Source: Klebsormidium nitens
Lineage: Eukaryota; Plantae; Klebsormidiophyceae
Reading direction: 5' to 3'
Assembly (NCBI GenBank): GCA_000708835.1
Contig: DF237114.1
Location: 1-64,000 of the forward strand
DNA length: 64,000 nucleotides
Part shown: positions 8,201-44,400 of the stretch, piece by piece
Numbering within the stretch: position 1 is the first letter of the stretch
Layout of the letters: every line of letters begins with the position of its first letter
Position numbers and translations under genes: made by a program
Notes under the pieces: model-generated
What the model saw: the letters and a program-made list of their open reading frames with translations, nothing else
Told to the model about the DNA's origin: nothing
The model's database searches: none

Positions 8201-9284
8201 AGATACCAGATCGCTGCTTTTGGTAATGCGCTAAAAGTACCTTCGCTTCGTCAAAGGCCTCCGCAGATGGTTCAGACGTTTTCGCTCTCACCTTTGCAAC
8301 GGTTCTCGGATTCAACTCAGGACAACTTACCTTCAATTTCGCACCAACAGCGGAAGAGAAAATATGGAAAAGACCGGGCGCTGCCATTATGCTCTTTCTG
8401 CCGAAAAACCTTTTGAAAAGCTAACCATTGAATGCAATCCGTTGATCACCTCGAAACTCAAACTTTGAAGCTGCAAAGGCGTCAGACCGTTACCTGAGCA
8501 CGATTTCTAGCAGGTCCTTGTAGTACCCAAAGCGCGCAACATGGCCCAGGTTCGTCAGCAGCGTCCCCGGGTGCTTCTCCGCCAGCCACAGCGCCCCGGT
8601 GTAAAACCCCTCCCGCTCACACTTCCCGGTTCCTCTTACCCCCCTGAGCTGGAAAAGGAGCTTCAGCGCCAGCAGGGAGTCCTCTTTCCACGCTGCTTCC
8701 AGCAGCTGGCGCAATCTTTCCGGGGGGGTGTCGGGGAGAATCTGGAAGAAGAAGTCCAGGCAAAGATTGCCGGAGCTCGTGTAGGTCCAGGAGCGGTTCT
8801 GAGTGTGGCCCATGGGGGGGGCCTGGACGCCCGCCTTGAGCGCACCCCCGGAAAGCATCCCCAGGAAAGGGTTGCCGGCAGCAATATCGCCACCCCCCTG
8901 GGACGGATCTGCTGACGTGGCAGCAGCTTCTTCCTCCTTGCGTTTCCGCCATTCCGCCAGGCCCTTGGGGCCGCAGAGGGAGGGGGTGGCGGAAGGGGCG
9001 ACGACGGGGAGGCTGCTCTTGATCGCCATGGCCGGAACCTGAGCGGAGCTTGAGCGGAACCTGAGCGGAACCTGCTTGAGAAACGCTAGCGATTGACGAA
9101 AAGTGAAGCGCTTGGTAAGCGGCGGAAGAAAGCTGGAGGAAGCCAGCAAAGATGGCTGCGAATGGGTTGAGCTTTGCGGCGGGGAAAGGAAGCTGGAGAA
9201 TGAAGATGCTTGCAAAAGCACGGATGCCATTTTGAGGACGGCGCAGCCCCTTACCTGGGCGACGGCTGAAGTTGCAAGCATCAT
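5232..9284 (-). CDS. DUF2828 family protein with C-terminal VWA-like domain; one frameshift in exon 2
   Basis: Exons 9284-8494, 7792-7116, 6762-6189 and 5606-5232, all with GT-AG borders and compatible phases. Family motifs: MGHTQNRSWTYTSSGNLCLDFFF, LRGVRGTGK..EGFY..ALWL..KHP, SLAAKWAPS, RDRLRKEVLTPLR, LPPHE, AVCDISGS, ITF, FQKVFD.IL, MEFD, GVALVSGFSKNLLRLF. The frame switches near 7435. Confidence 0.9.
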
Positions 9285-21039: not shown

Positions 21040-21483
21040 CCCGGGTAGGCAACTCATATTTAAAACGTACAGGTGATCGGCTGGGACCGCCAGAAAAGTG
21101 TGGGTCCCTACATGGTTATAAACATGGTTAAAACACGGAAAAACACGAAAAACACGGTTTAAACATGTTTTTCGGGTTTAAATATGTTTTAACCATGTTT
21201 TAAACAATAAACATGTTTGTTTATAATGTTAATTGCACTCAGAAAATCATGGCTTCGCCCGATGACATGTACAAACATCATTTGATGTTTTAAACATGTT
21301 TGTCGATGTTTATAAATCTCTGGGGGGGGCAGATTTTGAAACCAAGTATGTTTTTGAAAAGCTCTCAACGAGCTCGTATTGAAAACAAGAATGAATATGT
21401 TAGAATATGCAGTGATAACGAGATAAACATTGTTTCATCTCAAAAACATTGCTCGGGTTTAAGACCCTAGTTGCCTACCCGGG
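21040..21483. mobile_element. Non-autonomous DNA transposon (MITE), 444 bp, 15-bp TIR, 8-bp TSD
   Basis: CCCGGGTAGGCAACT (21040-21054) and AGTTGCCTACCCGGG (21469-21483) are perfect inverted repeats. TGATCATG flanks both sides (21032-21039, 21484-21491). The interior is AT-rich and non-coding. Confidence 0.87.
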
Positions 21484-22348: not shown

Positions 22349-23349
22349 GGTGATGGTATGCGTCTTCAAATTTACTTGAGATGACGCACAAACAAAGAGC
22401 CTTTGAATTTAAGCAGATCTCAATGTGGAACTCGGAAGGACAAGTAGCTAAGTCTGAGGCCCGAGCCAAGCGTGCTTCGCCGAAGCCAACCATGTCCAAA
22501 TTCTTAAGCACGAAACTGGAAACTTCATACCGTTTACAATAGAGTGGTGGGGGAGTGGAATTTCAAACATCGTCCAAGTGATGATCAATTACTAAGATGG
22601 TTGCCAGACGGGTCACTAGGGACTGTCTGGCGTCGAGCTTTATGACTTTCTTTGGAGGGCAGGTCATACGGTAGTCAATTTCATTGACAACCAGACAGCG
22701 AGCAGGGGCCATGGGATCTGAAGCGACACCATGCACAAGGCGCAAAAGGAAGAAAAGCATTCAGATAGCCTTTGATCAGATATATACAACTCTTTGTAGT
22801 CAATATCTTCTTGAAACACAATATCCAGAGTCTGCACATGTCGCCTGACCTCGTCGGTAGTTGACTTGCTGCCGACCCCACCAGCTATTGGGTGGTCATC
22901 AAGCTCGTTCGCACTGACCACCTTGTTACTGCAAGCGACCGCACATCAGTCTCTAAGATAGCAATAGATCTGCAAGATAGGGAAATATAATAAGGATTGG
23001 CTATGACACAGATTAGCAGTGGTAGATCTTCAAGACGGGGTAAAGGACTTGGTAAAAGAATGTGCGACAGACAGTTGAAAAACGGTTGATTGTGAAGACT
23101 TCTAGTATAGATGAAAAGTTGCCTGATGAGTGGCTGCCCTCGATGAGGTCACCCTCTTGTGTGGACAGCTATTTCAGAGTCCGCGTGAGAGCAGGTTTCT
23201 TTTTCGGTGAGATTTGGAAGGGTCAGGACATGAGCAGGGGAAAGACCAACAAAGTTGCTTGATTCAAATTGCACTTGCATATCATGTGCAAGCTTTCCTT
23301 CTACTTGGAGCCTTGAGTAACAGGAGAATAAGAATCTACTCTGGTACAA
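22311..23349 (-). pseudogene. Decayed LRR/RNI-like gene
   Basis: ORFs 22921-22664, 22760-22563 and 22511-22311 join through one frameshift (~22745) and one in-frame stop (22563-22565). The result is VQTLDIVF..YKELYISD..FLRLVHGV..RCLVVNE..KVIKLDAR..LKNLDMVGF, with LxxLxL-like periodicity. Confidence 0.35.
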
Positions 23350-24162
23350 AGAGCCAGCAGGTCATGCAGAATGTGAAAATGAGGTCAGTTGATAGCACAG
23401 GGCACAGAAGCCAGAAGTTTGATGTGGCGCCCAAGGAGTCTGCTATGGGATTTTAAGTTCTGTGCAAAGAGTACTTCCTGCAGATTTGTTAGTGGATAGA
23501 AATCGGTGCAAGTTACTCAATGTTTCAAGCACTGTTTCAAGCCTATGAGGCTATCGTTCACTACTACCTCACTTGGCAGCATTGGCCACGTGCCCATGCG
23601 ATTGATATATGAACTAAAGCATTCTTTGAGTCGACGGACATGAGAAAGTCTCACATTTATTGTCCCTTCTCACCAAAGGTTGCTGCCGAGGGCATGAGGC
23701 CCTCTTTGTTCTCCAACAGCCTACTGTATGCATCTGCATATGCCGTTCTGCACTATCCACATTGCGAAGCTCAGATGCTGTCAGTAAGCCCTAGACGTTT
23801 CAAGGAGCACCTTCGGACTTGTTGTGCTGCTCCAATTTCCTCTCGAAGTTGAGGGAAACCTCTAGCTGCAGAATGTAGAGCCTTGAGACTGTGCTCTTGC
23901 CATGCAGCTGGCGCCGTTTTGCTCGTCCGCTCGTAGGACGGTATTTGCAGCCTCGGCGGTTCGAAAGCTCGCGGCGGTATCGAATCGAAAATACCGCACA
24001 TTTGCCCTGCCCCGACGGAGAGTCGGGGAATTGGCGGTGTTTGGTAAAGGTCTGACTCCCATTCATTACCACGCAGTCTACAAAGAAGATCATCGTTCTG
24101 CCGCCGCTAGTTTCCTGTCCTTTTTGCCCTCACACTGCCAGCCTTTCCAAGAAAGATTCATA

Positions 24163-25171
24163 ATGGAGCTGGAAGACTTGCCAAAACCCCCTGAGCGCTT
24201 CTACCAGCTAGGAGGGTATGACGTCCTCGAGGATTTCATAGAAGGGATAGGCGAGAACGAGCTTATGCTGGCAAGTCTTCTGGCCCTTTACAACGAGGAG
24301 TACTTGCAGCAGAGGCCTGTTCCCCAGACCAAGGGTTTCAAGAAGCTTGTCAAGCCTGAAGTGTGGGAAACAGAGAACCACAGGTTTTGGTGGCGCAGGC
24401 ATGCAGCATATCTTCTGGGCTGGCAGGGGAGAAGGCAAGAAGGAGAAGGGGATGGCTTCACTGAAGCTATCAACAAGCTGTTGAGAAAGTATTGGGTGAG
24501 TAACTTATGACTTGCCAATCCTTTCTAGGGTTTCTTGCTTGAGAAGCAAAGAAAATTAGTGTACAGGACTGCGGTTGCAGTCAGTGTACTTGGTTGGTCT
24601 ACATTTGGTTTTGAAGCGGGGACAATGTCAAGGGTTTCTCAGGATTCAGAATCCTCATCCTGGTTGACAACAGAAAAGTTGCTTGCCACACTAGATCAGC
24701 TGACAGCAAATGAACGGCATACATTCATGCAGCAGGTTGGGTTGGAGTTTATTCAAGTTCCTTACTGAACGCTGACAAGAAAGACAAGCAGCATTGCCAA
24801 CCGTTGTCAGACCTATACTTCTGTGAAATGTAAGCTAGCGCTGTCGGCTGATGGTTTTCGGCTGGCCGTGGTTGCAGCCTAAGAAGGAGGACAAGAAAGA
24901 AGATCGTGGGCAGGCTACCAAGGAAGAGGGTGCAGCTGAAGGGATTGCACCTACTGACGCACCAGTAGCAGGGGCGTCGCGTGCACTTGCTGTGGACGAC
25001 CGCGCCGCACAAGGGAACCCTAAGGTGTGTAGTTTGGCAAACTTTATCCCTGTTGGGATTATGAGAAGGGTATGCCACACAATCTCAAGAAACCCTCTTG
25101 GTATCCTTCTACAACATACAACCGGCTGCTTGCGCACATGTGTCTGGACCTTCAAGAACGGTGCGATGTGA
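24163..25171 (+). CDS. Transposon accessory protein, KolX / P2X7 C-terminal-domain-like (putative, spliced)
   Basis: ATG 24163 MELEDLPKPPERF...ENHRFWWRRHAAYLLGWQGRRQ...FTEAINKLLRKYW, donor GTGAGT at 24496, acceptor TTGCAG then exon 24878 PKKEDKK. The join gives LRKYW|P, matching the IRxx(F/W)P end of that domain family. The 3' end of the gene is uncertain. Confidence 0.55.
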
Positions 25172-25717
25172 TGAGTGTCTAAAAGGGTGCAAGGTGGTGA
25201 TTGTTTGTTGCGCTGCCCTTACGATGACTCATTCTTCTATTTCAGAAAACTCAAAGGGGGCCTGTAAGCCGAGTTGTGGTCAAACGCCGCAAGGTGAAGG
25301 CCGGTCGTGCGCGGATTGCTCGCTTGGAGGACGAAGAGGTGAGCCGGTTATGGATGATCACTTGAGGAGTTGGCGAGCTTTGCGAATCTCGATGCACTTC
25401 ATATAGCGTGCTGTAACAGCCAGGCCTAAGACCATTTCAAAAAACATGCTTTGATGTCCGATGCCTCTGGTTGGTACTGGCAGCTCTGTGCAACATCGCT
25501 GTCAAGGCTCCTGTCTTGAAGCTTCTCTTGCTTGTATGCTTGCAGGACAGCCCCTCTCCCTCTGTGAAACCAGCCTTCATTGCTTCGGATGCGGAGACCG
25601 AGCCCCCCTCCGAGGATGACAACAATGTGAACTCGCCCCGTGCTTGAGGTGGGTCCGTTTCTTTGATCGTGTCAAAGCATGGACATGTGGTATTGCAATT
25701 TAGGGGACAGAGATGGT

Positions 25718-26133
25718 GGTTGCTTTGCGTCCGCCAGACCTTTTGTTTTTTGGGGGGTGGGAATTTGGTTGCGTCGCGTCCACCAGACCTTTTGTTTTTT
25801 GGGGGGGTGGGGGGCAGGTTGTGATGCGTCCGGCAGAGATGAATCTTCCCGGGGGGGTGTTACAAACAAGTTGTGTCGCGCCTGCCAGACCTTTTGTTTT
25901 CTGGGGAATGGGGGCAGGTTGCGATGCATCCGCCAGAGATGTAGTTTGGATCCGGGGGGGTGTTGCGAACAGGTTGCGTCGCGTCTGCGGTACCTTTGTG
26001 CTCAGGGGGCGTGGGAGCAGGTTGAGGTGCGTCTGCAAGAACTTTTGTTTTCGGTGGGGTTGGGAGCAGCTTGCGGTGCGTCCGAGCGAGCTTTTGTTTT
26101 CTGGGGGGGTGGGAGCAGCTTGCGGTGCGTCAC
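25718..26133. repeat. G-rich tandem array, ~8.5 units of 48-55 bp
   Basis: Consensus approximately GGTTGCGTCGCGTCCGCCAGACCTTTTGTTTTTGGGGGGGTGGGGGCA. It lies immediately upstream of the transposase ATG at 26195. Confidence 0.9.
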
Positions 26134-26194
26134 ATTGAAACGTGTCATTCTGTTGTGGATTGTCCTGCCAGATCTGCTGTCTTTACAAACTAAT

Positions 26195-28762
26195 ATGGAG
26201 AGTCAGATGGAGTACGCTACTGTTTCATGCTTGTGTGGTTCAGTTGTGAGGGGCAGGTTATCGTCGCGCTTTGCCAGATTCCGATTTCGGGGGATATATT
26301 TCGTGACTCGTTTTACAGCAACATTGGAAAACTTTGCTACAGCCGGACAGTCTACAAGAATCTGTCTGCAATGCTCACAACTTCAGAATTCCGTTGTACA
26401 GGGAGACTTGCGTGTTGCGATGGCCACGCCGGAGGGGACATCCGGCGGCCTCTCGTTCGGAGCGGCGATGGCGGCGAGGAGGAGCGTGAAGAAGGCGGCG
26501 GACAAAAGACAAGTTGCTGCCGCGAGTCTCGCAAGTGTGGCCTCCGTCAGCGTTGCAAGTGGTTCAGCCCCTAGGTGTTGGAAGGGTCGTTTAGAGCCGT
26601 CGGGTAGCTCCCCGGTTCGCACTAGAGGGGAGGAACTTGTGCGTAAACCGGAAGCATACAGTCCAGGGATGCGCGTCGTAGGAGAGAGTCGGGGAACTGG
26701 GTCGGTCGGAACCGATAACCGGGTTGTAAAGCGAAGGCTGGTCTCCAAAACAATCGGCCCGCTGTATGCACGCCCAACTATCATAAGGCGGGCTCCCGCA
26801 TGTAGGCCACGTCCTCGTGCCGAGAATGATGCCCCTTCCATGCCCACAGGGAATCGGATTGTTAGCATGAAACTTATGGCTGACTTTCTAGAGACCACTT
26901 GCTCGAACTGTGAGTTTGGCGGGCGGCTGCGCCTAATAGGGGAGGATAAGAAGATGGGCTTGGCTAGCCGGTTGCTTTTTGAGTGCGCTTGCGGTAAGTC
27001 GTACTCTTTTGAGACGACCGAGGAAGTTGCAAGCGCGCCGGGGGTAAGGGGTCGAAAGGCAAGGGGCATCAACTATCAGGCTATAGTCGGCGCAATAGCC
27101 ACCGGTAGCGGGTTGAAGGGCTTGCAGAAATTGATGGGGTGCCTGAATGTGCCCTCGTCCGGACACGACGCATTTGATGCGGCAATGGAGAAAGTCATAG
27201 AGGCGATGGAAATCCTGTGCGATAGGTCTTTCAAAGAGGCCATCGATGAGGTCATCCGACGCCTTGAAGAAAACGGGGAAGTGCCGCTAAGGATAGTGAC
27301 GGAGCAAGGGAAAGAGGCGTCGTTGTTTTGGGCCATCGCGGCAACCTTTGACGGCGGTTGGCCGAAACGGGGCACGCGGTCGGGGGGGTATAACTCTCTC
27401 GGGGGGATGGCGGCGTTGATGAGCGCGCTAACGGGCAAGGTCCTGCAAGTGGAGGTGTTGAACACGCGGTGCGGGATCTGTGACCAAGCGGAGGACCTCA
27501 AGACGGAACCCCCCGATCACCGGTGCCACCGGAACTACGCTGACAGCGCGAAGTCGATGGAGCCGGAGGGAGGCGTGCGGATGCTCGAACGCATCACGAA
27601 ATTCGGGTGTGTTGTACGCGATCTCATCGGGGATGCCGACTCAAGCGTGATGGCCGCTGTAAGGGAGCGCTTGCCGCCATGGATTGCAAATGTGGTCGAG
27701 AAGGCGCTTGATATCGGCCATCTCAAAGGCAATCTATATGATAAGATGACGAAATTGAAAGCGTCACAATTTAAGAAGGATAGGAAGGCCTTCACGGATG
27801 GGCAAATACGAGCTGTAAGCTCGTATTTCGCCGCGGCAATTCTCAGTAACCGCGGCGACCGCGCAGCAGTCAAGCAAGCGCTGGAAAGCATAGTCCCCCA
27901 CCTCTTCAACGAGCACGATAAGTGCAAAAAGAAGAGGCACCCGGAGGATGAAGAGGGTTGGTGCAAAGCCGGTTTGGAGCCCGATCACGTTCCGAACCGG
28001 TTGAAAAATCACGGCGGCTAGTTCACCGGAGACAATTTCCGGAAAGCGTTGGAAGACCTCATTGGGCACTATGTGCAGCCGGCAATGCTCGATCAAATTT
28101 ATAAGGGTTACTCGAGCAATCAAAGCGAAAGCCTCCATAACACAGTGGGAGTATTCGCCCCAAAAAGGTTGCACTACTTGAGGTCGGGTTCGTATTATCT
28201 CCGGGTCCTAGCCGCGTGCTTGAGCAAAAACCATGGAGAGGGATGGGAGATAGCTCTTCTAGAGCAGCTAGGGGTCAATAGTGTTGCCGAGCTTGGGTCG
28301 CCGGGCGAGTTGATTTTTAAAAAGTTGAAGAGAAATAATAGGAAGCAAGTGGAGCGGAAGATGCTCGTGCCCGTAAAAAGGCGCCGGCTGCAGTTGAAGC
28401 AAGCGCGGCATAAGAGAAACTGGCACGAAGAGCAGAAGGACGGGGGGCCGCATGCCATGTACGGCTCGGGGATGCACGAGCTTCCACCGAGCATGCCCGA
28501 GCGGACCGCGCCGCAGGCGGCGGTGCCAGAGACGCCCGAGCCGGAGGCAGTGGCGGGGCCAGGGGCGATGAGCCGCGCATGTGCTGTCGCGACGAGCGCA
28601 TCCGCGTTGGGGCAAGTTGTCCAAGTTACGTCGGCGGCCGAATACGAGGGCCACTACATTGACCATCCCGTTGTCAAAAAGCGCACTTTAACTAGGTACA
28701 TTTCGGGGTCCCGAACTTTCCGCTGGCTGGGGCTGGCACCGTCCGATGAGTGCCACGTATAG
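26195..28762 (+). pseudogene. DDE transposase (Kolobok / 'Mutator-like transposase' type) with in-frame premature stop
   Basis: Motifs C..C...GLASRLLFECACG, INYQA....ATGSG, TFDGGWPKRG...YNS.GG....TGKVL..EVLN.RC.IC....H.C.RNY..S...ME.EG, LIGDADS, HLFNEH.KC...WC and NQSESLHN....FAPKR. TAG at 28019-28021 is followed in the same frame by FTGDNFRKALEDL and ORF 28049-28762. Confidence 0.9.
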
Positions 28763-28942
28763 GGACCGAGTCCAAGTCTGTCAGAATTGCACTTGTACAC
28801 TGCGGCAGTACTTTCTCCGTCGAGTGTACTCGGAAAATTCAAGGTTACAAGAATTCACCGTCGGCAGGTTTATCCTAGCTGGCGGTACTAGCCGAAGGCT
28901 ACCGCGCGGGCCGTACCGGGCATTATTTACAGCCTACTCAAT

Positions 28943-29733
28943 NNNNNNNNNNNNNNNNNNNNNNNNNNNNNNNNNNNNNNNNNNNNNNNNNNNNNNNNNN
29001 NNNNNNNNNNNNNNNNNNNNNNNNNNNNNNNNNNNNNNNNNNNNNNNNNNNNNNNNNNNNNNNNNNNNNNNNNNNNNNNNNNNNNNNNNNNNNNNNNNNN
29101 NNNNNNNNNNNNNNNNNNNNNNNNNNNNNNNNNNNNNNNNNNNNNNNNNNNNNNNNNNNNNNNNNNNNNNNNNNNNNNNNNNNNNNNNNNNNNNNNNNNN
29201 NNNNNNNNNNNNNNNNNNNNNNNNNNNNNNNNNNNNNNNNNNNNNNNNNNNNNNNNNNNNNNNNNNNNNNNNNNNNNNNNNNNNNNNNNNNNNNNNNNNN
29301 NNNNNNNNNNNNNNNNNNNNNNNNNNNNNNNNNNNNNNNNNNNNNNNNNNNNNNNNNNNNNNNNNNNNNNNNNNNNNNNNNNNNNNNNNNNNNNNNNNNN
29401 NNNNNNNNNNNNNNNNNNNNNNNNNNNNNNNNNNNNNNNNNNNNNNNNNNNNNNNNNNNNNNNNNNNNNNNNNNNNNNNNNNNNNNNNNNNNNNNNNNNN
29501 NNNNNNNNNNNNNNNNNNNNNNNNNNNNNNNNNNNNNNNNNNNNNNNNNNNNNNNNNNNNNNNNNNNNNNNNNNNNNNNNNNNNNNNNNNNNNNNNNNNN
29601 NNNNNNNNNNNNNNNNNNNNNNNNNNNNNNNNNNNNNNNNNNNNNNNNNNNNNNNNNNNNNNNNNNNNNNNNNNNNNNNNNNNNNNNNNNNNNNNNNNNN
29701 NNNNNNNNNNNNNNNNNNNNNNNNNNNNNNNNN
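28943..29733. other. Assembly gap (791 N)
   Basis: Run of N inside the transposon. Confidence 1.
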
Positions 29734-30163
29734 GGGCATTCGGCCAGTGTTGACAGCTGGGGACGAATCGGGTGAGTCGGAAGGGGAGTCCGACAGCGAA
29801 GAGGAGTTGGAAACGGTGTTGGGGAGAGAGGGTTTCGAAGTGCCGGCGCCAGGGTACGACACCTCGTCGGAGTCGGACGACGAGGAAGACCGTGTTGGTT
29901 TCGAGGAGAACGCGATAGTCGAAGATGCCTCCGATGGGGAAAAGGAGGACACGTCGGAAAGTGAGGAAGATGATTCGGCGAAGCGCGTCGAATTGCCGGC
30001 CATCGTCGGCTTTCGGCAACGCCGGCCAAGTCGGAAGGCATTGGAGTCCGCTTCAATAAGCGAACTTCCGGTGGCAAAGAGGACAAAGCGGGAGGTTAGC
30101 CGAGACATATTCGACGTAACATGGGCTGTGCAGAGAGGACGGTCGAAAAGAAAGCAGGCATAG
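29734..30163 (+). CDS. Acidic low-complexity C-terminal coding fragment with basic NLS-like end; 5' part lost in the gap
   Basis: Open frame GDESGESEGESDSEEELE...SESDDEED...KRTKRE...RGRSKRKQA*, on the same strand as the transposase; probably its tail or a third element ORF. Confidence 0.5.
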
Positions 30164-31106
30164 CTGTAAAGGGAGTGTCCGGAGACTTTGCAGCATGTTC
30201 GGCATAAAATAACGGGCCTCCGGATTCAAAATCGCGAACATTTGAAGAAGCTAAGCATGACGTATTGAGTAATGAGCAATGAAATGTCATACGAAGTGCT
30301 TTGCTCTTCCAATGCCTCGAAGTAGAAGTACATCATGGTATATCTTCATGGAATAATGCAGTGGCGCTGCCTAGACGCCTGAGGCATGCATTTCGCGCCT
30401 TTTGGCGAGTGTACGATGCTCAAATTGCATGTCACAACACCCTAGATTACATAATTGTTGCTTGGAAGTCATACATGAAACTTTTCATTGGTTATATGAC
30501 GTTGAAGAAGGATTTCCATGTCATATTCGACAGGTGCTGCAGTTCTGCGCCAGTTTTTGCTGTTCAGGGCCTATTTTCTTTGGATTTTTGTGGACTTTTT
30601 TTGACACGATAGAATGCTTTCAACCAAGGGGGTTTATGCATGGGGGGAAGCTGGGATGCTAAAATGATTTTGTGCATTATTTTTGAACGGAGATGTGCAC
30701 CGCTAGCACTACCTTTTCTTATCACCAGCAGCAGACTGGCGCAGTTTGCTGCTGGCACAAGAGAAAGCAAGGCTGGCGGTGCACATCTCCGTTAAACTCG
30801 GGATTTGAGCACGCAGGCGGGATCCCAGCTTCCCCCCATTGGTCGATACTGGTGTTACACGTCATTCTGTCGTGAGAATTTGCGCCTAGCCATATGGTCA
30901 AAGTAGGGGGGCCAAAAGGCAAAAATGGTACTGTATGCACTATTGCCAGACCTTACTGGCTGGGCTTAGGGTGGCCGAGGAGTGGTTTGGGGGGGCCCCT
31001 AGACCCCCCCTGAAGGATGCAAAAGACTCGACTCAATTTGAGTCGGTTATGACCAAGTTACGCCATGGGAACCCCTGTTCCGAGCTGGAATTACCGTCCT
31101 ACCACC

Positions 31107-31500
31107 GAACAGGCCTCTGCTGCAAGTACTCCTCGTTGAAAAGGGCCAAAAGACTTGCCAGCATAAGCTCGTTCTCGCCTATCCCTTCTATGAAATCCTC
31201 GAGGACGTCATACCCTCCTAGCTGGTAGAAGCGCTCAGGGGGTTTTGGCAAGTCTTCCAGCTCCATTATGAATCTTTCTTGGAAAGGCTGGCAGTGTGAG
31301 GGCAAAAAGGACAGGAAACTAGCGGCGGCAGAACGATGATCTTCTTTGTAGACTGCGTGGTAATGAATGGGAGTCAGACCTTTACCAAACACCGCCAATT
31401 CCCCGACTCTCCGTCGGGGCAGGGCAAATGTGCGGTATTTTCGATTCGATACCGCCGCGAGCTTTCGAACCGCCGAGGCTGGAAATACCGTCCTACCACC
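31107..31500 (-). repeat. 394-bp inverted copy of the element's left end (23929-24323)
   Basis: The reverse complement matches 23933-24323 with only three substitutions noticed by eye. It includes the first ~53 codons of the accessory ORF, and TTAA follows at 31501. Confidence 0.95.
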
Positions 31501-31569
31501 TTAAGTCAAAAATGAGTTCAATTTCTTCAACTTCAAATTCAATTCTCTTCAAGTTCAAGATGGCGGCAT

Positions 31570-31577
31570 TAGGGTTT
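31570..31577. promoter_or_regulatory. Telo-box-like motif upstream of DUF1223 gene
   Basis: TAGGGTTT (reverse complement AAACCCTA) ~410 bp upstream of the ATG and 70 bp from the transposon end. A single short motif could be chance. Confidence 0.35.
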
Positions 31578-31987
31578 GCTTCATTTGCTGGATCCTAAGC
31601 CCTATTAAATTTGTAGGGGACTTCTTTTGTGCAGGTCGTCAGGAAGCTGCAGAGCTGCATCTTTTCCAAGTTTCCTTTGCAGTCTTTTGATCTGGCGCCT
31701 TCGTGGTTCAAAGCGACAGCACTATGTAATGGACATTTATGCGGAAAGCTGCTGAGGACACTTTGAAGCATTGTTGAAGGCTCCCAGTACATCCAGATTG
31801 AAGCTTGGTTTTGGAAAAAGAGCATTTTGTAAAATTCGAAAAGCGGCTTGCCAGCGAAACCCGAGTCACATGGGAGCAGAAAGAGCTTCAGAGAATCTGG
31901 ACCTGAGATACCATCTGTCCAGTATACAATGTTTCATGCGCGAGCAAAATAAGCAAATCACATTCCTTGTCAAGGCGGGAAGTAGAT

Positions 31988-34900
31988 ATGGGGGCATGCT
32001 TCAGTAAAGGTTCGAGGAATGTTTCTGAAAAGAGGTCAGAGCTACACAAAGAGCCGGACGGGCCTGGTAGCCTTGCGGCACGAATTGCAAACGGTGAATT
32101 TGAGAAGATGAGTCAGGCAACATTGAGCCTGGCAAACGGCAGAGTGGGGATGGAGCTGAACGCACAAGTGTCAGACGCGCAGATGCCGCTTATCCTGGAG
32201 CTCTTCACTTCTCAGGTTGGTTCAAGTGCTCATGCCTCCTCGCATTAAGTACCTTCAGCAGTTCAAGTAAAGTGCTAGAGACAGGACATTGAGCAGATTT
32301 CCGCAAAGTGTCACTTGTCTTGTGATTAATTCGTAGCTCATCCGATGAGACAGTTGTGATCAGTGCCTTCTAAGCAACTGAAATGTTGAGCTTTGTGAGC
32401 ACGATTTATGCAATGCCGAGCTTGGAGCTTGACGGACTGGTAGAAGAATCCTCTACTGACTGATGGCAAGTGGTGTGAAGGCAAGTGGTGGTGGCTATTG
32501 ATTACGGGTTTGAGCGGTAGCTACTGGAATGTTTCTTATCAGTATACATTTAGGCGTGTTTGAAGAAAAGGTCCATGACAGGTGACACATATCTTGTTGA
32601 GCCATCATCGATTACTTTGCCTGGCAGCCACAGACGGTGCCTTGCTCTGAAACCTTGCGTTTACAATCCAACGTCAGGGATCTGGGTTCCTTCTTTTACA
32701 TGATAAGGAAGGACTGCAGTGACCCTTTTCTACAAATAATGCAAGCGCGTATTGTGTGGAAGGTAGGACGTTCCCCGATCAATTTTGTTCAGGGTGCTTT
32801 CCTGTTTGAGCCGTGATCCTTTTTTATGTCCTTCAAGATTCCTGGTTTTCTCTAGTAAGCCTGTCGTGTCTGAGACCTGAGTTTGTGTTGCATCTTGATA
32901 TGAATCTTTCTGCAGAGGCTTTGTGAAAGAGCACTGATTGGCTGGAAGGCAGAGCAGATGCATGTCATGCGCGCTTGTCTAACTCGCTTGTCTAACTCGC
33001 TTCTTGTCATCCCCGTGTCTCTTTCAATGCCAGCAAGAGCATAGAATCTGCTCTTTCACCGATTATAAAGTTTTTACCCTCTCACCCGACTGATCTGAGA
33101 AACCCACACCATCTGCAGGGTTGTTCTTCGTGCCCCCCCGCCGACGACCTCCTGAAGCATGTCGCAAAGCAGGGGGCCATCAGCGGGATTCCAGTGATCC
33201 CCCTGGTGTACCATGTGGACTACTGGGACCACCTCGGTTGGACGGACCCCTTTGGACGGAAGGAGTGGACGCAACGGCAGAGGACGTACGCAGAGAAACT
33301 AGGGGAGGGAAAGAAGGTGTACACACCGCAGCTGGTGATCCAGGTGAGCGGAAGGAAGATTGAATGTAAGCTCGGGGTTAAGCGCTCAATCAGTTTGCTT
33401 GACAGTCTACTGTCCCCATGTCTTTTGGATTGAGATGGGCTTCAGAGTAGTCCACCTGTGATTGGTTTCTTAAGCCACACTGCCAGTACTATTTTTCTTA
33501 AAAGCCGAGTTTCAGGTTGACACCTTGAACTCTGAGTCAAAGTTTGGGCCTGCCCGCTGTTGTGCTCTGCATGCTTCCAAGAATCTAGCAGGAGCATCAG
33601 GGTCGGCGTTTGCAGCTTTGCGGCATCGCAGTCATGATTGTAGAACAACAGATATCTTGTAGTAACAACCTTCCAAACCAAATGACCGTCAGTTTGCCGA
33701 GCGTCTGCTTTTGACTGACTCGAAATTGCATTCTGGATGCTGCAGGGATCTGTCGGCGAAGTGGGCTCCAAGAAAGATGCCATCGTCCGAAATGTGTCAC
33801 AAGCGGCCCGGTACCCCCCTTTCACGGCCAAGGTGAGCAGACAACGAGGTGTACTAAGTATGCGGAGTTGACGGTCTACGCAGAAATGGGGCCAGAGGCG
33901 ACAGAACGAAGACTTCACATAACCGTTGTTCAAACGTGGTGATGCTGTTGGGGTGGAAAATCGCCTCCAGGAATGAAGTCGAGCATCCCAGAGTTCCTTT
34001 TTCCTCGCCTGTTAAAGACAGCGCGGGGTTGTATCCAGAGAACACGGAGAAGCGGTGCGTTAAGATGGTGGAGCGCGGTTTTGGAACTAGCTGTGCACTA
34101 AAGCACGTCCTTTTTGTGAAGACTGACCGCGTTTCCTGGTGGGATTGTCCTGTTGGGGATCGTCCTCTTTCTGCACGTCCTCTAGTTTGCCACGAAGGCA
34201 GGATTTGGTCATACTCCTTCCTTTTGGATAACTCTTATACGGTTTGGTCCTCCTTGATCCGTTTCTCCTCTCCTCTCTAGAATCGAAACCAAGTTCGATC
34301 GGCACAACGTGAAACGGTTCGCTCTTTCCGCTTCCGGGTGTTTGTATCATTTTCTCAAACCCTTCTCGTCCCTTTTATCGGACTTAAGTCCAATTTACAC
34401 GACCCGGAAACGTTTTTCAATCCTTTTCAGATTACTCGGATTGCGATAATTCTGTTTCGCATTAGCCAGGCTTTTCAATTACACCAAGTCTTACGACAAC
34501 TCCGTCTTAACCGAGCGTTGTTGTCAAGCTTCTCACCTCAGAGATCAACCAGACCTTTCATTTCATATTGCACCAACTCAGGTTGACGACTACGTGTGGT
34601 CATGTCTCCGCCGCACGTCCCCCAAAAACGAGGTCGGGAGTATCCAACAAGGAGTACTACATGTCTATCCGTTTGTTCCCTTTTCTGACGCTTCATTCGC
34701 TCCTGTAACCTCCCTCCAGATCGAGGTAGAGCTTGACCTACACAGCCTGGAGCTCGAGGTCGACCTGACGATGCAACCGCTGCCTGCGGCCTACGCTTCG
34801 CTGACGTCATCCGCTGACGTCATGGTAGCCCTGTACGAGGACGGGCTGCGGACGGACGTGCGGTCGGGGGAGAACTCCGGGCGGTCCCTGGAGAGCGTGC

Positions 34901-35094
34901 ACGTGGTGCGGTCTCTGGAACGAGCCTTCTCGGTACCAACCGGCGAATCGAACCGGGAGGAAAAGAGAGGGAAAGTGCGGATGAAGCTGGCCGGGGGGAA
35001 GTGGAACCGGTGTGGGCTGGTGGTCTTTCTGCAAGATGGAGACACGTGGCGCGTTTTTGGAGGCACGCAGATACAGCTGTCGGACGACCTGTGA
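31988..35094 (+). CDS. DUF1223 thioredoxin-fold protein (304 aa)
   Basis: Exons 31988-32215, 33119-33343, 33746-33832 and 34720-35094, all phase 0 and GT-AG. Motifs LELFTSQGCSSCPPAD, YHVDYWDHLGWTDPF..EWT.RQR.Y, YTPQLVIQG, VMVALYEDGL...V.SGEN.GR.L....VVR.L, CGLVVFLQ. Confidence 0.92.
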
Positions 35095-35499: not shown

Positions 35500-38400
35500 C
35501 TGCAGCGCTTTTTTGGTAATATCGAGCAGCAACCAGCTTGATTCACAAGCGAGCCGCCTGACGGTCGTCGTAGGGCATCTGACGAGACGGTGGCATTTGT
35601 CTCTCCCTTCTCGTTGCTCTACGACGTGGACTTGTGAGTGCCAACTTCTCCCAGTTGTGAGACCAGGTTTTGCGAAACTCCTTTTTGATAACTGGTTGTG
35701 ATTGTGTCACTTTGTCAAAACCGTTCGATAATATTTTTTGTTATGGCGGCACCAGGAGAACTGCAAATTTTCCAGTTTACCAAGCAATCTCTACCGCCCG
35801 TTTATGCTCCTCTTCCAGCATCGTGCCTCTCTGCGAGTATTTGACAACCTTTGAAAGCTGGCTTGGCTGCAAGGTTCCTTGAATGGGGACCAACAGCGTC
35901 TAAGTGCTGCGAGGAATCTGGTCTCTGGGACAGCGCGACGATTGATAGCGTGTTGGTCTGGGTCTTGGAGGTTTCTCTTATTGGTCGATTGTGTTTTTAG
36001 AGACTTTCCGAGCTTCTTTGAAGGACAATCAATCACCTCTTGGACCGTGGCACCTGTAACCAAGATAATATGTCCAGGCAATGACAACCGCTTGACTGGT
36101 TGATCCTGGTAGCCAAAGGCGAAGTTATGCGGACCTTGAGCCACCAATTACTTCTTACTATTTTTTTCGTTCTTCTCTTCCCCTCCTTTCTTTGTTAAGG
36201 AGCGAGGCTTCAAGCTTCTCATGTCGAAAGGTCAGCTTTGCGTCCTTGTTCGCATTCGCTGGCGTCTTGTGGATAACGCAATCTTCGAAACGAAGCATGC
36301 TTGGCGCATCTTTGGTCGACAACTCTGTCAGGGGTCTCCGAATTGCAGATAGCCTTCTCAAGCGTGGCCCCGCGATTTTAAAGGATCAAGTTTGAACACG
36401 TCAAGGTGCGGTCAGCCTTTTGGAGCATTCGGCCGACATGATTAGCGGATGGGCGTAATAGTAGATGACAAAATGCCATTCGACTGCGTTCGCAGTGATT
36501 TCGTAAGCGACCGCGACTGCCTCTGGTTCTGCTGATTGGTCGCCGAGACGTCGGTATCGGAATTCTTTTTCGAGGCGGGAGCTCAATCATCGAAAGATAA
36601 TGGCATGTGGAACCGCGGCCTTCAGATTGTGCTTTGCCTTACTTCCCGCTTGTTCCTGTTCTAGCTCTTTGTTGCGATTGTACACTTCTCATGTGAAGGT
36701 CCTTTCCAAACGTCAGAAAGTTGTTTCAAATCTCTGCTGGCTCGACATGCACTTTTTGCTTCCATTCAGAGACTTGTACTGAAAAGAGCGGGCCTCTGTC
36801 TCTTCTCGTTCAATTCTTCAAATAGTGACCGGCTGCTGTCAAAGGTCAATGCTGAGTTCGTTAACCACGTTCTGGCACTGTATTTCCCCCACAGACTGAT
36901 CGGGCAAACGGAGATGGACAATTCTTCCAGAACCCACGGCAGTTTAGATGAGCACGAAAATTTGTAAGAATCTGGAATGCGCAATGTCAAGTCACTATCA
37001 GTTTCAACCAATCTTGCGGTGGTCGTAGCTTGCATTCTTTGTCAAGTATGGCAATGGCGTTCGCGTTTTGCCCGCTCATGGCTGCCAACAGGGTGGTCGG
37101 ATGTAAGCTATGAAGCCGATCAAGCTCTTGAAGCATTGTCTCTGACACCCAGCTCGACGCTAACCCGCGCTTTTACATATGAACCCGTTCGCCTCGGACC
37201 GCCGTCTTGTTGTGATCACCGTGTCTATGTTGTGCTCCATAGCGAGAAAATTTGGCAATGCTGAATCTCCCAGTGGCTGCTGATCACGGCAACCTGGCTG
37301 TGAATTCTTCGAAGCCAGCTCCTCACTCGGGTCGTCTGTAGACAGCTGTTAGTACCCTAAGGATCCAGGCGCAACATGTCCAGTCTGAGCAGCGGGGCTT
37401 TGCCCCCTCGTAGACTCTTCCTGGTTGTCAAAACCTGTCAGAACAGTGGCGTTTGGAGTTTGTGATTGGCATCGCGACGCTTGTCGAGAAGCAACGCCTT
37501 GATATTCATCCACCTACGGACGTTCGTATGGCAACTGAATACTGTACCGGAGAGAGTGCGTCAGCCGTGCGTCCTTCAAGTTTAGGCAGGTACAAAATGG
37601 CCGGGTATCAAGACGTCAATGTAGTGAGTCATCCATTAGTGCGTCTCTTTGTTCAACAATGTTATTCTGTCCGTCTGGTTCAGAACGGGTGCTGAGTCCG
37701 GCCGTCCAGCGTTGACGAAGCAGAAAATCTTTGACTTCCGTGCGGGCAGCACGCTTTTAACGCTTAAAGTTTGCCACGCGGTTGCCTTCGTCGATAATGA
37801 AACTGCGACTTGCGATTGTGAGTGCTCTTTCTGGCTTTTTTCTTGCGACTAAACATGACCGCGTCTCCTCAAGTCGGCCCTGACGATCTCTCCTCCTCTG
37901 TTGGAGGAAGTTTTGGAGCATATCGACCTGAGCCGCGTGGACCCGTTTTTGCCGGTCCTTCCGTTAAAAGTTATCGCACTTCATGAACGCCTGAGCAGTA
38001 CTGGTGGCGAGAGCGGCATGATTGACTGCAAGTATAAGCAGAGTTCCAGGTCATCCTACCCCGCAATCAGGGTTCTGTATCTATACCTTAACTGGGCTTT
38101 TCAAACGAAGCCGCGCACAACTTGGGCCCGCTTCATTTCGACCTTGAAAAATAAGCAGCCGTTGGGTCGCTGGCTATCTGTCATTGCGCATGCCCTTTGA
38201 TTTACTCATCAAAATTACCGCCCTCAGTACACTGTTACTACGTGTTGTTCTGCCGTTATGCCTTCTGTTTACCTTTGCGTTTTGCGCAGTGTCTGGTCCC
38301 TAATCATGGTCGTCAGAAGACCACTGTCTTGAAACAACAGCACATTTGACGTATCTTTTTCTCAGAAACATGATTCTTCTCCAGGAGATCTCACACGGTG

Positions 38401-41400
38401 TTTCACCTTTTATCATTTGCACCCACTCCACTACCAAGAGCAGGCCGAGCTGTCTGGGCAACGATGAGCTCATGAGATGCGCAATCACAGCGCAGATACC
38501 TTTCCAAGTCCGGCTCTGAGCCATGGCCAGAGCTTTGAGTTGCCTTCAATCCTTTCGCGTTCGCTCTCCGCCTCGTCCCTACGCGGACTTTGAACGAGGG
38601 ATAGGCGGATGCTTCCGCACCTGGCGACTGAGACCAACGCGCATAAACAGCATTTCCGGTCGCCGAGACTTACACGATTTGACTTATTGCAGCGACGGTA
38701 ACAGCCGGTCTTGCAGGTTTGAGGCCGCCGTGACAGAGTCGAGCATCACAACCAGATCAACACCTTATGTGTCCTAGGTCTAGTAGGTCTATGAAGAGTA
38801 TACGTTACGGATTGTCAAGGCACTCACTGCTGTGCTTTGTGCTTCGTGTCGGAATCCCTCTGTAGAGGGATCCCTTGCTTCACGACTGTTAATAGAGCTG
38901 ACACAGGCTCGTATTTGGACCAGCGAGGCATAGACTTACACAAGGGTTTCCAGCGAAGTACGGCCCATCAAGGCGTGGCCCCCGCAGTATGGGACACAAG
39001 CTCGAAAACAGAAATCAGTTCTGCCCAATGCGATACCCAGCTGAGGGTGCGAGTCAGGGATGCTCCTCTTGCGTGCCACGTGGATCCGGCCGGGCGGACG
39101 CCTTCGGACGGCCGGAACGGATGCAGCGGAAGCGGACGTCAGGAACGGACGTGTTTGTGCGTCCACGTGGAAGGAGTGCTTGAATGAACGGCGTTCAAGG
39201 CCGACGATTTCAGGTATGACGTCAGCTTTTCTTGTGTGATTTTATCTCTGCATTGCATGGCCCCGGTCGTTGAGTTCTTACACGAACAATCGAAAAGGGC
39301 CCTTTCCTCCGTCACAATTGTAATATTTTGGTGTGTTACAAGACTGTACTTCTTGCGTCAGCCAAAAGGTTTCCACTTAAAAGGGTCGTCCTTTAATTTG
39401 TTTTCGCCCTCGTTGACCGATTTTGTGGATTCCTGTCAAAAATTCACGCTGAAACTCGCCAATGACGCTTTGACACTGCGCTACTGCCCAGAGCTTGTCT
39501 TTGGCAAGTAGGCGAAGTTCTTCCGACAGCGAGTCGGCTGCTTCTGAAGATAAAGGATCTGCAGTGACTTGTTTTCTGGTCTATATGTTGCTAATGTTGC
39601 CACTACCGTTTTCCTATCAAGACCTCCTTTGGGTGTAGGGAATGAGGTTCTGCGTTTATAGCTGCTCACAGCAACCACAAACTTTCGACAGTCGCGCCTT
39701 CAAATCATGTAAAGAAATTCTGGAAGACTAGCAGCTGGACACTCGGCCTGCTCGCTTTGAAAGTCTTCTCCTGAAAATCCTGTCTTGGTTTGTTTCGCTT
39801 TATAGTCAAGACACCTTGACAATGCCGAACACAGCATGGCTGCCAAGTTTGGCCGGCCATCTCAAGGGCATTCGCACAGATCTCCAAGCCAGGGTAAGAC
39901 TAAGTCGTCCGTGCAAGTGGACAGCTATTTACTGTTTTGTGAAAGGTCCAGACGCAGGGCCCTCTTTTTCACGAGATCGGGGTCTCGTTGTGGCAGGAGT
40001 GCGCGTTCAATGACAGCGGTACCATCGACTGTAGGTTGAAACCAGAACCACCCGCCAAGCCAGGTCTTCAGTATCTGAAAATTGGCTTTTTAAAGAAACC
40101 CTCGCACCCTTGCACCCTCTAAAGTTGCAAAACGCGCAACTATTGGGAACACCGGCTGAGGATTCCTGGAGAAGTCGGTTTGCAGTGCGGTAAACTATAC
40201 CGCTGCCCCTGCCAGCTTGCTCCCTCCCGACCTTGCAGAACGTACTTTTGTAGGGTCGCCGGCTGATGCTCTTACATGCGATAGAGGTATCGGTGGGAGT
40301 CATGACACGTGGTATGTGCGCGTCTTCGGAAAGTACACCGGAACTGCGGCCATCATCTTTTAATACCTGTTTTCTGACCCTGTTGCTTCTCGTTGTTTGC
40401 ATTTTCGCCAATGGCACGTCACGTAAGTAGGGTCATGCTAGCTTCACTATTTATACCACACTCTTTGACGTGCGCTCAAAAATAGTCTTAACCCATATTT
40501 CACCTGCATCTGCCTTTGAGCGGTGCTGTGCTGTTTGGCCACGATGAGCTTTGGCATGCGCAGAATATTACGCACGATCTGGTTTGAACTCAGAGCCATG
40601 TCCTGGACCTTCAATTTCTGCGAGCGCTTTTACGTTTCTGTTTCGGGTCTTAGCGGAGTCCTGGAATAGGTTCTGGGCGGATGCGTCCGCACTCGAGGAG
40701 GACGCCTTTTCGACGGCTGGAACGGGTGCAGCGAAACGGACAGGCCGAAACGGATGCAGCGGAACCGGACTTGCTGTAGAACAACGGACGGACGCGTCCG
40801 TGGGGTCCATGTGGAAGCAACGGGAAAGCGTGAAGCGCGTTCCAGGCGAGACTCTCAGAAGCTGAACGTGTCTTGCTCCGGCCTTTTCGTTTTCTTTGAA
40901 CCGGCCTGGACGGGTTCAGTCGTACGATTGCGGAAGGTAACGCTCCTTCTCCTCCATTCGAGCTTTGTGAGATATATTGGTGCTGACGTAACTCGCAGTG
41001 CTGGCGTCGGAGGCTTTCTGTAACGAGAGCGGCTCTTTCTGTGCCTTATCCTGTCTCTGACTTCAATGTCGAGATTAGACCATGCCGTCGAACGTCCACT
41101 TAAAGCTCGTCGAGAAGCTTCGACAACAAACCAATTCCCACGGACCCATCGGGGCTACGAACAAACTTATCGAATTGTGAAGAAAAGGAAAGGTCATTTG
41201 ACGTGTTGCCGTTTCCCTCCTTCGTTTTCTGCCATGATTCCCCCATCATTTGGCGGTAACAGAAGCATGTTTTCATGTACTCGGGGCAATGAACGTTCTC
41301 CTTTGTGGCTGCTGATTACAGCCACACCTGTCCTTGAATCACAGTGAAAGCCAATCTAAGTTATGTAGCAATCATCTCCGACGACCAGCTCGGAAAACGA

Positions 41401-44400
41401 TTTGATTCTTTTCAGGATTCAGCTTGCCTTGGATACCTTGGATAACTTGGTTTGATCGAATTGTCTAAGCGAGTATGTTTCAATAGCGACAGACCTTGGT
41501 AGTGCCGAGATTCTCAATGGCTGCTGATTACGGCAGCTGGGCAGCTCTGTTCTCGGCGCCAGGTGCTCATCCTAGTCGTCTGTAAACAGTTATGAGTATT
41601 CCAGAAAAGTCCAGGCCAGGCACAATACGCAGAATTTCAGCAGCGACCCGGCGTTGGCCTTCGGTCTTTTCCTCGTCAGCTTCCTGTTTTTGTCACTGTC
41701 TGAGTAGTGGCTTTTGAAGCATGTAACTTGTATTGCGACGCTTTTCGACGAAAAATCCCCTGGTAATTACTGGCAGCGAGTACGCGGTTTGCGTGGCAAG
41801 TGCTCATTGTCCCGACCGTGCGCCACTCAAGTTTAGATGGATGGGGAGATCATTACACTTTTCCTTCAGCGCGGTTCTCGGAGTTGGTAATGACTCACTC
41901 GTCTGGCTAAGAACCGGTAATAAATTCACTGCCGTCTGCCGTCAAGGAAGCTACAAGCCTTTGACATTTGTGTCAGCACTTTCAATGCCTCGACACGCGC
42001 TTGCATACCATCGAAATCTGATTTGCTTTTTGCGGCCGGGATGCCGTTGTTAGTGGTAATTGTTCTTTACCGCGTCCATCGAGTGTTACAGTGACGTCAG
42101 TCGGCTCTGACGGTCTCCATTCCTCTGTCGGAGAACTGACGTCGTCAGATCGACCCGAGCCTTGTGGCCATGTATTCAAATTTCAATCTAGGTGAGTCAG
42201 TCGGCTCCGACAATTTTCACTCTTGTCGGAGGATTGGACTCGCGCCACGTGACCGCATTGGTAAATCTTCGAGTGACGTTAGTCGGCTCTGACGAACGCG
42301 GGCCACTCCTCTGCCCGAGGATAGAGCCCAGGAGCCACATCCGAGCCACGTTGCCGCAGCTTCCCTGGTCCATCTCTTGGAGTATTGTACTCAATGATTG
42401 CGTGAGCTTTTACTGCGGTGATAGAAGCGGCCGACACGAACAATTGCAAAGCTGTCATCGAGCGAAAAGCACGTGGCAGGTCCTATGCGACTCTGACATT
42501 GGGGTTTCGTACTTCCGGAGCGGCCCGCGTGCCTTTCGGGCAAATTGCGGAAGCAAGAGCCCACTCCCGCCCAACCTTGCAAACTGTCGCTCGCCACTAG
42601 CATCTTGGGTCGTTGTTGACTGTACTTGCGCGGGTGCCCTTTCTTGATCATATACATGCCCAAAATTGCCGCCCTCGGTTCGAAATCATGTATTGTCTTG
42701 CCATGATGCTTTCCCTCGAGCTTGCGTTCCTGCGTTACGGCCGCGTCACGCAATCATGGTATCAGAAGACCACTGTTTTCAAATAATAGCCCGTCTGTGG
42801 TAACTTTGTTCCAGTACACTGTTCCGATCTGGGGATCTCGAACGGTGTTTCACCTTTTCTCATTCGCATCCACTCTTTTACCAAAAGCAGGCCCGGTGGG
42901 CCGGGCTGTAGGCGCAACGATGAGCTTCTGTGGTGCGCGCGGGGCCGGGAAAATGGCGCAATCTTTGTTTCAACGTCTAATAGCTCTGAGCCGCTTCCAG
43001 TAGATTGAATTGGCCTCACTCTTTCTGTTAATCTGCTCCCCGCTTCGTCTACGCGGACTTTGAAAGAGGGTGGGGGGGATGCTTCCGCACTCGGCGATGA
43101 GAAAGCAGCTTTCCCGGTCGCCGAGAAACACGAGTTGAATTAGTGCAGCGACAATCATAGCCGGTCTTGCAGCTTCGAGGACCTCGCAACAGAGCTGAGT
43201 GCGTCGCAACTATTTCAACGCCCTTTCTGAGAGCGTCTTGTAAGACTTATTCTAACAGAACTGTCAAGGAGTTGCTGCGCTTTACAAGGCTTCGCTTGGT
43301 TTGGCACTTTCGAAACAGCTGCAACAGATCCTTTTTGGAGGCATGCACAAGTTTCATTAGGGTGTGCGATTTCCAGAATCTGTTGTCCCAGCTCCTTAAT
43401 TTGAGCTTGCCACGTGGACAAACCAGGTCGGGCGGGCGCCTTTTGATGGCCGGAACCGGAAGCGGCAGAAGCGGATCAATCAAAAGTAGAGCGATGGAAG
43501 AACACTGATGTCCGCATATTTGCCACATTAATAAGCGACACCAGACTGTATGATTACGTGTCAGGCCTACTAGGCCTAATAGGCTTTCAAATATGAATAC
43601 TCTCTTTTTCCAAGATCTGCGGATGGGTCCGGTCGTCCGTTTATCATCTGAAAGGCGGCACACCATCTCCTTGTCCGAGACTTGAAAGTTTGTGTATTGG
43701 CTTACAACATGTTACTCTTGGCACCGGAGCCTCTTGCCAAATAGAGCGGCTTTTTTTGCGTCTCTTTATTCTTCTCTTATAGACCACCGGGTTTTGTTTA
43801 CTGAGCTTGTTAAAATCTGGTCTAGAAACTGCCAATGAGGATTTGACACCACGATACCGCCCAAGAACTGGGCAATAACGATTGGCAATCCTTCAGAGTC
43901 GACAGCAAGTCGGATGGAGAGAATCTTTGAACTACTATATCCACTTTCTATGACCGTGCCTGCCACTTTTCGTTTCCTATTTATCAGGTTGATTCGTAAA
44001 TATAGGCAAGGCAGAATGCTTCTATGGCTGCGCGCTGATCACAGCCACGTCCTCTTTCAGGAATCCTTATTGAGCCATGTGAACAACATCACCAATGCCT
44101 AGCTTGGAAACTCGCTCGTTCTAAGTCACCCCCGCCCTTCGGGAGTCTTGTTCATAGAATCCCATTTGTGTTCCATCCGCAAAACCCTGGCAATGCTCAA
44201 TTTCCTAAGGCTGCTGATCAAGGCAACTTGGTAAGTCTATTTGCGGAAGCCAGGGCCTAGTGATCCGGGTCGTCGCGAATGAAAGATTCTTGGACCTTTC
44301 CCTGAGATTGCTGCTTGCGCGATTGTACAATGTTTCTTATGATCGGGGTTTTGCACACTTTGGGCCCTTTCCTCCGACGTCAGCTGCCTGCGAATATCGC

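Follow-up and report, generated by a model that had tools for sequence, protein, structure and literature searches.

The 64,000-nt stretch of Klebsormidium nitens DNA analysed here (contig DF237114.1, positions 1 to 64,000 of the forward strand; hereafter the window) contains, at positions 23929-31500, a segment which with good confidence represents one defective and probably single-copy DNA transposon of the Kolobok superfamily. Its transposase is 100% identical to the NCBI protein KFL_001650040 from the same streptophyte alga, which is located on a 163.6-kb scaffold, is the sole member of its own 90% identity cluster and occurs on one contig only.

The transposase is encoded on the + strand, mainly by an exon at 26402-28018 (annotated splice acceptor at 26402, first ATG at 26420), which is supported by the PF20700 profile and by conserved alignment columns. 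The open reading frame (ORF) runs from 26420 to 28018, meets an in-frame TAG at 28019-28021 and continues from 28022 to 28759. The three DDE motifs listed in the first-pass annotation (DGGWPKRG, GDADS and NQSES) are directly visible on this strand: FDGGWPKRG with the codon of the first catalytic D at 27350-27352, GDADS at 27632-27640, and NQSES with the codon of the catalytic E at 28127-28129. The exon at 26402-28018 additionally holds an N-terminal C2C2 zinc ribbon, a CCHC finger, a DxxH motif and an HHCC finger, while the frame after the TAG (28022-28762) comprises the catalytic E, a C-terminal part conserved to about 28475, a low-complexity stretch and the stop codon at 28760-28762. In a Pfam search, the first piece of the transposase matched PF20700 ('Mutator-like transposase') at E 4.7e-64 over profile positions 1-353 of 357; this was the sole significant family, no other Pfam family being matched at E <= 0.1. 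As a side observation, a 17-nt stretch of the element's 5' leader (24018-24034, part of a small CCCCGAC..GTCGGGG hairpin) recurs with 94% identity at 26684-26700 within the N-terminal coding part of the transposase, which may be due to chance.

A full HMMER search against 1.84 billion representative sequences (cut-off E <= 0.001) identified 2112 relatives of the transposase. Just four fragments, derived from metagenome or sequencing-run assemblies and carrying no taxon, share 43-49% identity with it, and the next relatives follow at about 31-35%; a word-based search of 5.8 billion proteins gave one other match, a 381-aa metagenome fragment with 49% identity. The nearest relatives that bear a name come from scallops and from a thrips. 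As judged from these comparisons, the transposase represents a lineage without a named close relative, in keeping with the possibly undescribed lineage suggested at first sight. When the query, its stop replaced by X, was aligned with 87 relatives of at least 500 aa, it proved to share with them the conserved block of the first D (FDGGWPKRG), a C..C...H.C finger, a SAKxME block, GDxDS, [D/C]xxH, an H..H..C....C finger and the E block (NQSESLHN). The DIGH of the query aligns with [D/C]xNH in the 87 relatives, with H665 being nearly invariant, and the same holds for H725, H730, C733 and C746, which form the zinc finger between DxxH and E (numbering according to P0001, the public gene model of KFL_001650040). 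According to Kojima & Bao 2022 (PMC9587614), the C/DxxH signature is common to Kolobok, hAT, P, MuDR and Dada, while a zinc finger between C/DxxH and E is present in all Kolobok elements except Kolobok1 and absent in MuDR, P and hAT; the layout given there for Kolobok, which is D, CCHC finger, D, DxxH, HHCC finger and E, is matched as a whole by the signatures of the query. PF20700 was found in 64 of 64 relatives scanned, together with a YqaJ domain in 14 of them and with a DEDDh exonuclease with Exuperantia/PML_C matches in about 13. In the same survey, a YqaJ partner is assigned to KolobokE and a DEDDh exonuclease partner to KolobokD (PMC9587614), and one of the relatives, P0065, resembles KolobokE_1_TC_1p in its Data S5. 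By its sequence, the transposase is a member of the Kolobok superfamily, and because of the motif layout, the YqaJ and DEDDh partners and the likeness of P0065, PF20700 equates to Kolobok and its Pfam name is misleading, which should be useful to annotators of such genes. Some members of PF20700 are labelled 'Maternal protein exuperantia' or 'Ribonuclease T' at NCBI, after the fused exonuclease.

To place the transposase within Kolobok, trees were calculated from 86 rows and, more carefully, from 35 rows, the latter set also being used for an approximately unbiased (AU) test. In both trees the YqaJ and the DEDDh labels are each confined to one side of a branch. The query falls outside the YqaJ clade with a support of 100/100 and outside the group holding the DEDDh-bearing relatives with a support of 92/90, and it is sister to two metagenome proteins (93/93); joining it to the DEDDh-bearing relatives is not rejected by the AU test (p 0.12). 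No exonuclease, YqaJ, His-Me or other additional domain was found in any readable frame of the element. A hidden Markov model (HMM) of 34 KolobokD-type tails matches, with its positions 1-109, residues 36-151 after the TAG (E 2.5e-18); applied to all six frames of 23000-32500, where 791 N within an assembly gap are unreadable, it recognised the shared C-terminus of the transposase only and no exonuclease.

Among the known lineages, KolobokD provides the closest full-length relatives (30-35% identity; for instance P0005 from scallop, P0012, P0014 and P0017), which agree with the query in the D / CCHC / D / DxxH / HHCC / E layout and in their side of the tree. In contrast to these, the query lacks an exonuclease or PML_C-like domain in its readable frames, although the gap could hide one, and it branches outside the DEDDh-bearing group, although joining the two is not rejected by the AU test. 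With KolobokE, such as KolobokE-1_TC from Tribolium, in which the transposase is combined with a YqaJ / lambda-exonuclease-like nuclease, it shares the homologous core and both zinc fingers, but neither the YqaJ domain nor the position within the YqaJ clade. Kol0, represented by Kolobok-1_XT and the XKol/T2-MITE elements (MITE, miniature inverted-repeat transposable element) of Xenopus with transposase and KolX, is alike in superfamily, presumed TTAA target, purine-purine termini and element size (7-14 kb), and internal tandem repeats are known from the Xenopus MITEs; however, the transposase studied here has no THAP hit, its N-terminus being the C2C2 ribbon of PF20700, and the ORF upstream of it is devoid of cysteine and of any homologue and thus no KolX. 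A KolX-like ORF downstream of the transposase was not found either. KolobokP, finally, resembles the element in that the terminal repeat measures several hundred bases and the first D is followed by a CCHC finger, but its repeats are direct, with short terminal inverted repeats (TIRs) of their own, and it encodes a His-Me nuclease, whereas here the repeat is inverted, its unit is without TIRs and no nuclease ORF is present.

Two breaks within the element are directly apparent. The in-frame TAG at 28019-28021 aligns with a tyrosine in P0002, P0005, P0009 and P0010. Further downstream, an assembly gap of 791 N, the length of which is estimated, extends from 28943 to 29733, and the transposase frame stops at the TAG at 28760-28762, 180 nt before it. 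Of the three + frames, two are closed by stops shortly before the gap, and the remaining one opens only at about 28692. A tail profile of 34 relatives matched the query to about 28475 only and nothing on either side of the gap; as no homology bridges the gap, continuity and reading frame across it cannot be established. A single observation connects the two halves: the part behind the gap ends in the terminal motif of the left end. This part begins with an ORF on the + strand at 29735-30163, open from the edge of the gap and with its stop at 30161-30163, that encodes an acidic, serine-rich sequence with a basic tail. Neither a Pfam match nor any similarity to the relatives was obtained for this ORF, and it could be the last exon of the transposase gene or part of another gene. 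The 3' non-coding region further contains a near-perfect hairpin of 200 nt (30640-30839), identified by its inverted repeats and by folding (minimum free energy -124 kcal/mol, z -11.4), with no Rfam match and no flanking TTAA or other duplication. The hairpin might represent an insert of the foldback or MITE-like type, or else a precursor of small RNAs. Rfam gave no match anywhere within 23000-32500.

The ends of the element are dominated by an inverted repeat whose geometry can be read directly. Its left arm (23933-24322, + strand), which takes in the 5' leader together with the initial 160 nt of exon 1 of the upstream ORF (ORF1), is 99% complementary to a right arm at 31107-31496 over 390 nt, with three mismatches. 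The right-hand segment as a whole, 31107-31500 on the - strand, repeats the first 394 nt of the element in inverted orientation and has an intact GGTGG terminus, and it carries a second ORF1 start that reads from the outside inward on the - strand (ORF 31099-31398). This outer right end reads ...TACCGTCCTACCACC and is followed by TTAA at 31501-31504, as reported at first sight; this is the only TTAA flank of the copy. The short TIRs beginning with GGTGG that had been proposed do not describe this arrangement, since the repeat is a 390-nt inverted duplication including part of ORF1 exon 1, and GGTGG is seen at the right-hand termini only. The left TIR of about 28 nt (23929-23956, + strand) starts with GCTC in place of GGTG; it thus begins GCTCG rather than GGTGG, corresponding to two mismatches in the terminal 15-mer, and no TTAA adjoins it. 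The 15-nt terminal motif recurs as an exact copy at 31092-31106, abutting the inner edge of the right arm, where the end motif is repeated over 23 nt (31084-31106); nothing comparable is present where the left arm ends on its inner side. Aligned with the reverse complement of 31080-31106, the left end agrees at 26 of 31 positions, with one gap, and gives an imperfect TIR about 27 nt long, in which the terminal 4 nt and the flank mismatch. Elsewhere in the window, the 15-mer has only one match with three mismatches, which is of chance quality (4 matches vs 0.71 expected). Both right-hand termini begin with GG when read inward (CC on the + strand), fitting the 5'-RR...YY-3' ends of Kolobok, while the left terminus is degraded to GC. 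The original right end of the element appears to be at 31106, the probable right TIR at 31080-31106 (- strand, ending in the same ...TACCGTCCTACCACC) being about 27 nt long. On the simplest reading, the first 394 nt were recently duplicated in inverted orientation (divergence 0.8%), this copy (31107-31500) became joined directly to 31106, and the four outermost bases of the left terminus (now GCTC instead of GGTG) were lost together with its TTAA. It is plausible that the duplicate originated from a transposase-made adjacent rearrangement which started at the old terminus. Simple nesting of one copy in another was rejected, since the 31106 junction lacks TTAA and the element is not continued in the left flank; likewise, a repeat-mediated mis-join at 31106/31107 is unlikely, as the junction shares no repeat. 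A 22-bp tandem repeat (two copies, 90% matches, 31517-31558) is located in the AT-rich host flank just beyond the TTAA.

Upstream of the transposase and in the same orientation, ORF1 spans 24163-25647 on the + strand with exons at 24163-24495, 24878-25024, 25246-25338 and 25546-25626, and a G-rich tandem array consisting of 8.3 copies of a 49-bp unit (25718-26131, + strand) is located between the two, as noted in the first-pass annotation. Mapping the public model P0001 onto the window yielded the ORF1 exons, a 21-nt micro-exon within the array (26006-26026) and the exon 26402-28018, and all introns of the mapped model are GT..AG and of phase 0. The annotation hence joins ORF1 in frame to the transposase, as 5' exons of one gene; if the last ORF1 donor is left unused, reading continues to a TGA at 25645-25647. 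Thus, of the separate spliced ORF that had been described, the co-oriented exons are present while its separateness is uncertain. Exon GC (0.52-0.61) compared with intron GC (0.46-0.49) and the GC content at third codon positions of exon 1 (GC3, 0.63) suggests that ORF1 is a real coding sequence. Searches with ORF1 were carried out exon by exon, and with the joined form only as the public model P0001. They gave no Pfam match at E <= 1, no homologue in the protein length classes of 111-353 aa and 420-1337 aa and no similarity to 185 Kolobok relatives; in the ESM Atlas, only bacterial hypothetical proteins below the threshold were obtained. A single-sequence AlphaFold model of ORF1 was of low confidence (pLDDT 47.5). 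ORF1 is accordingly a lineage-specific orphan, whose promoter and first exon reside within the terminal region of the element.

Several observations weigh against regarding 23929-31500 as a single Kolobok copy with short TIRs and a secondary 5' duplicate. TTAA is present on one side only, and both the left flank and the 31106 junction are without it; what indicates the TIR, a target-site duplication and the true right end comes from this single locus. A sequencing error might account for the in-frame TAG, scaffolding alone connects the left and right halves across the 791-N gap, and the predicted splice between ORF1 and the transposase is known only from the annotation model. In addition, native TIRs of 390 nt with a subterminal binding site would look similar. 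In such an arrangement, the whole inverted repeat would be the native TIR and the motif at 31084-31106 a subterminal binding site of the transposase, which would agree with the 99% identity of the arms, with the intact outer right terminus next to TTAA and with the long terminal repeats known in one Kolobok lineage, KolobokP. However, the internal motif directly borders the right arm on its inner side and is missing from the corresponding position of the left arm, and the KolobokP repeats are direct, with short TIRs and a His-Me nuclease of which nothing is seen here, so that we consider native long TIRs rather unlikely. A smaller probability is assigned to the idea that the inverted repeat, or the joining of the halves, is an artefact of assembly or scaffolding. 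The gap inside the element and the draft nature of the scaffold, which dates from the short-read era, would allow for it, but the arms differ at three positions and are therefore not one sequence used twice, the 31106/31107 junction offers no shared repeat at which reads could have been mis-joined, and the part behind the gap ends in the matching terminal motif. That the element is a Mutator-like element (MULE), as might be concluded from the name of the Pfam family and from the C/DxxH signature that Kolobok and MuDR have in common, is highly improbable: no other transposase family was matched at E <= 0.1, the flanks of either candidate end show no 8-10-bp duplication, the relatives carry KolobokD- and KolobokE-type nucleases with one of them reading like a published Kolobok family, and MuDR, P and hAT do not have the zinc finger that lies between DxxH and E (PMC9587614). 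The original assignment to Kolobok rather than to MULEs is thus supported by the PF20700 match, the motif layout and the type of relatives. Similarly, piggyBac was rejected; TTAA is present, but there is no Pfam hit to a piggyBac family, and the termini are GG..CC.

For ORF1, the first-pass annotation had put forward that a KolX-like accessory gene was moved upstream of, and co-oriented with, the transposase of a two-gene Kolobok relative. Such a gene would be in line with a co-oriented spliced ORF that has a possible stop of its own at 25645-25647, with the array and a TATA-like stretch that separate it from the transposase, and with the relative P0007, whose start at a Met aligned with ATG 26420 indicates that the transposase may be translated alone. 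KolX, however, is a zinc-binding, cysteine-rich P2X7 'ballast' domain with seven conserved cysteines and is confined to the Kol0 lineage, other Kolobok lineages having other partners or none (PMC9587614), whereas cysteine is missing from all exons of ORF1, which has neither a Pfam match nor a homologue, is fused in frame to the transposase through phase 0 introns in the public model, and accompanies a transposase nearer to the KolobokD and KolobokE types. ORF1 was therefore rejected as KolX, and a relocated KolX-like gene is improbable. The layout is not non-canonical either, as KolX belongs to Kol0 only and the other lineages have other or no partners, so that there is no single canonical layout from which to depart. 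A novel accessory gene that is not KolX deserves more serious consideration, even if we do not regard it as the likelier case. ORF1 would then be independent and end at TGA 25645-25647, and the transposase would start at ATG 26420. The stop of ORF1 itself and the start of P0007 favour separateness, and the elevated exon GC and GC3 suggest real coding; on the other hand, there are no homologues that would demonstrate conservation, the structural model reached a pLDDT of 47 only, and the annotated fusion is in frame. The residues just after the P0007 start are conserved, so that this start slightly favours a transposase that is able to stand alone; the gene call for P0007, however, would be blind to upstream exons. 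ORF1 may be either a set of 5' exons belonging to the transposase gene, which is the annotated structure, or a small gene of its own.

We infer the mode of transposition from knowledge of the Kolobok family. A DDE transposase of the RNase-H type with an N-terminal zinc ribbon would bind the TIRs of about 27 nt (GGTGGTAGGACGGTA...), upon which an intact element would be excised and pasted into a TTAA site, thereby duplicating the TTAA. The present copy would be disabled by the TAG at a position where relatives have a tyrosine and by a left terminus without its last four bases and TTAA. As the left terminus is damaged and the two intact termini face the same way, the copy should be immobile. The maize Mu killer is an inverted partial duplication of the MuDR 5' end. 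The structure described here is alike in being an inverted duplicate of the 5' end of a transposon that includes the leader and the first coding bases, and by analogy read-through of the duplicate could give rise to long double-stranded RNA; Mu killer differs in that it derives from another superfamily, and in the present case the duplicate and the element it copies are physically joined. It might thus be speculated, with little confidence, that a Kolobok lineage so far only found in this streptophyte alga carries a transposase gene which gained an orphan N-terminal module or a partner ORF with its promoter and first exon in the terminal region, and that the 390-nt duplicate produces long double-stranded RNA by read-through and leads to Mu killer-like self-silencing, or else that the gap hides a further accessory nuclease.

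In the 2022 survey of Kolobok elements, the plants were represented only by the chlorophyte Micromonas and by rhodophytes (PMC9587614). In the literature searched, no paper linking Kolobok with Klebsormidium or streptophytes was found. A Kolobok transposon is now placed in a streptophyte alga, which adds a new host group to a known superfamily. As the copy is a broken relic, its biological weight is modest, and the orphan ORF1 and the inverted 5' duplicate are curiosities at present. Other copies did not appear in a scan of metagenomes with an alignment of the query and the four nearest fragments, nor in one with P0004 alone, and a scan of bacterial and archaeal genomes for the element was blank as well. 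A search of viral contigs for the terminal motif gave no match, and a sequence search of the PDB yielded chance-level matches only.

In the remainder of the window, a palindrome with 48-nt arms (77% complementary, 1-nt spacer) is located at 21112-21208, about 2.7 kb to the left of the element, and consists of AT-rich short repeats. Two ordinary host genes were recognised near the element, an ORF at 8493-9284 on the - strand (Pfam DUF2828, E 2.8e-37) and an ORF at 34594-35091 on the + strand (Pfam DUF1223, E 3e-10); eight other large ORFs of the window had no Pfam match. Direct repeats of 49-76 nt with 75-86% identity occur about 4.45 kb apart at 38313-38743 and 42762-43199, which suggests the tandem duplication of a segment of about 4.4 kb within a region of persistent negative AT skew (34-62 kb). 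Two more diverged pairs of direct repeats, with 78-83% identity and a distance of 3.7-4.6 kb, are present at 56963-57380 and 60631-61937.

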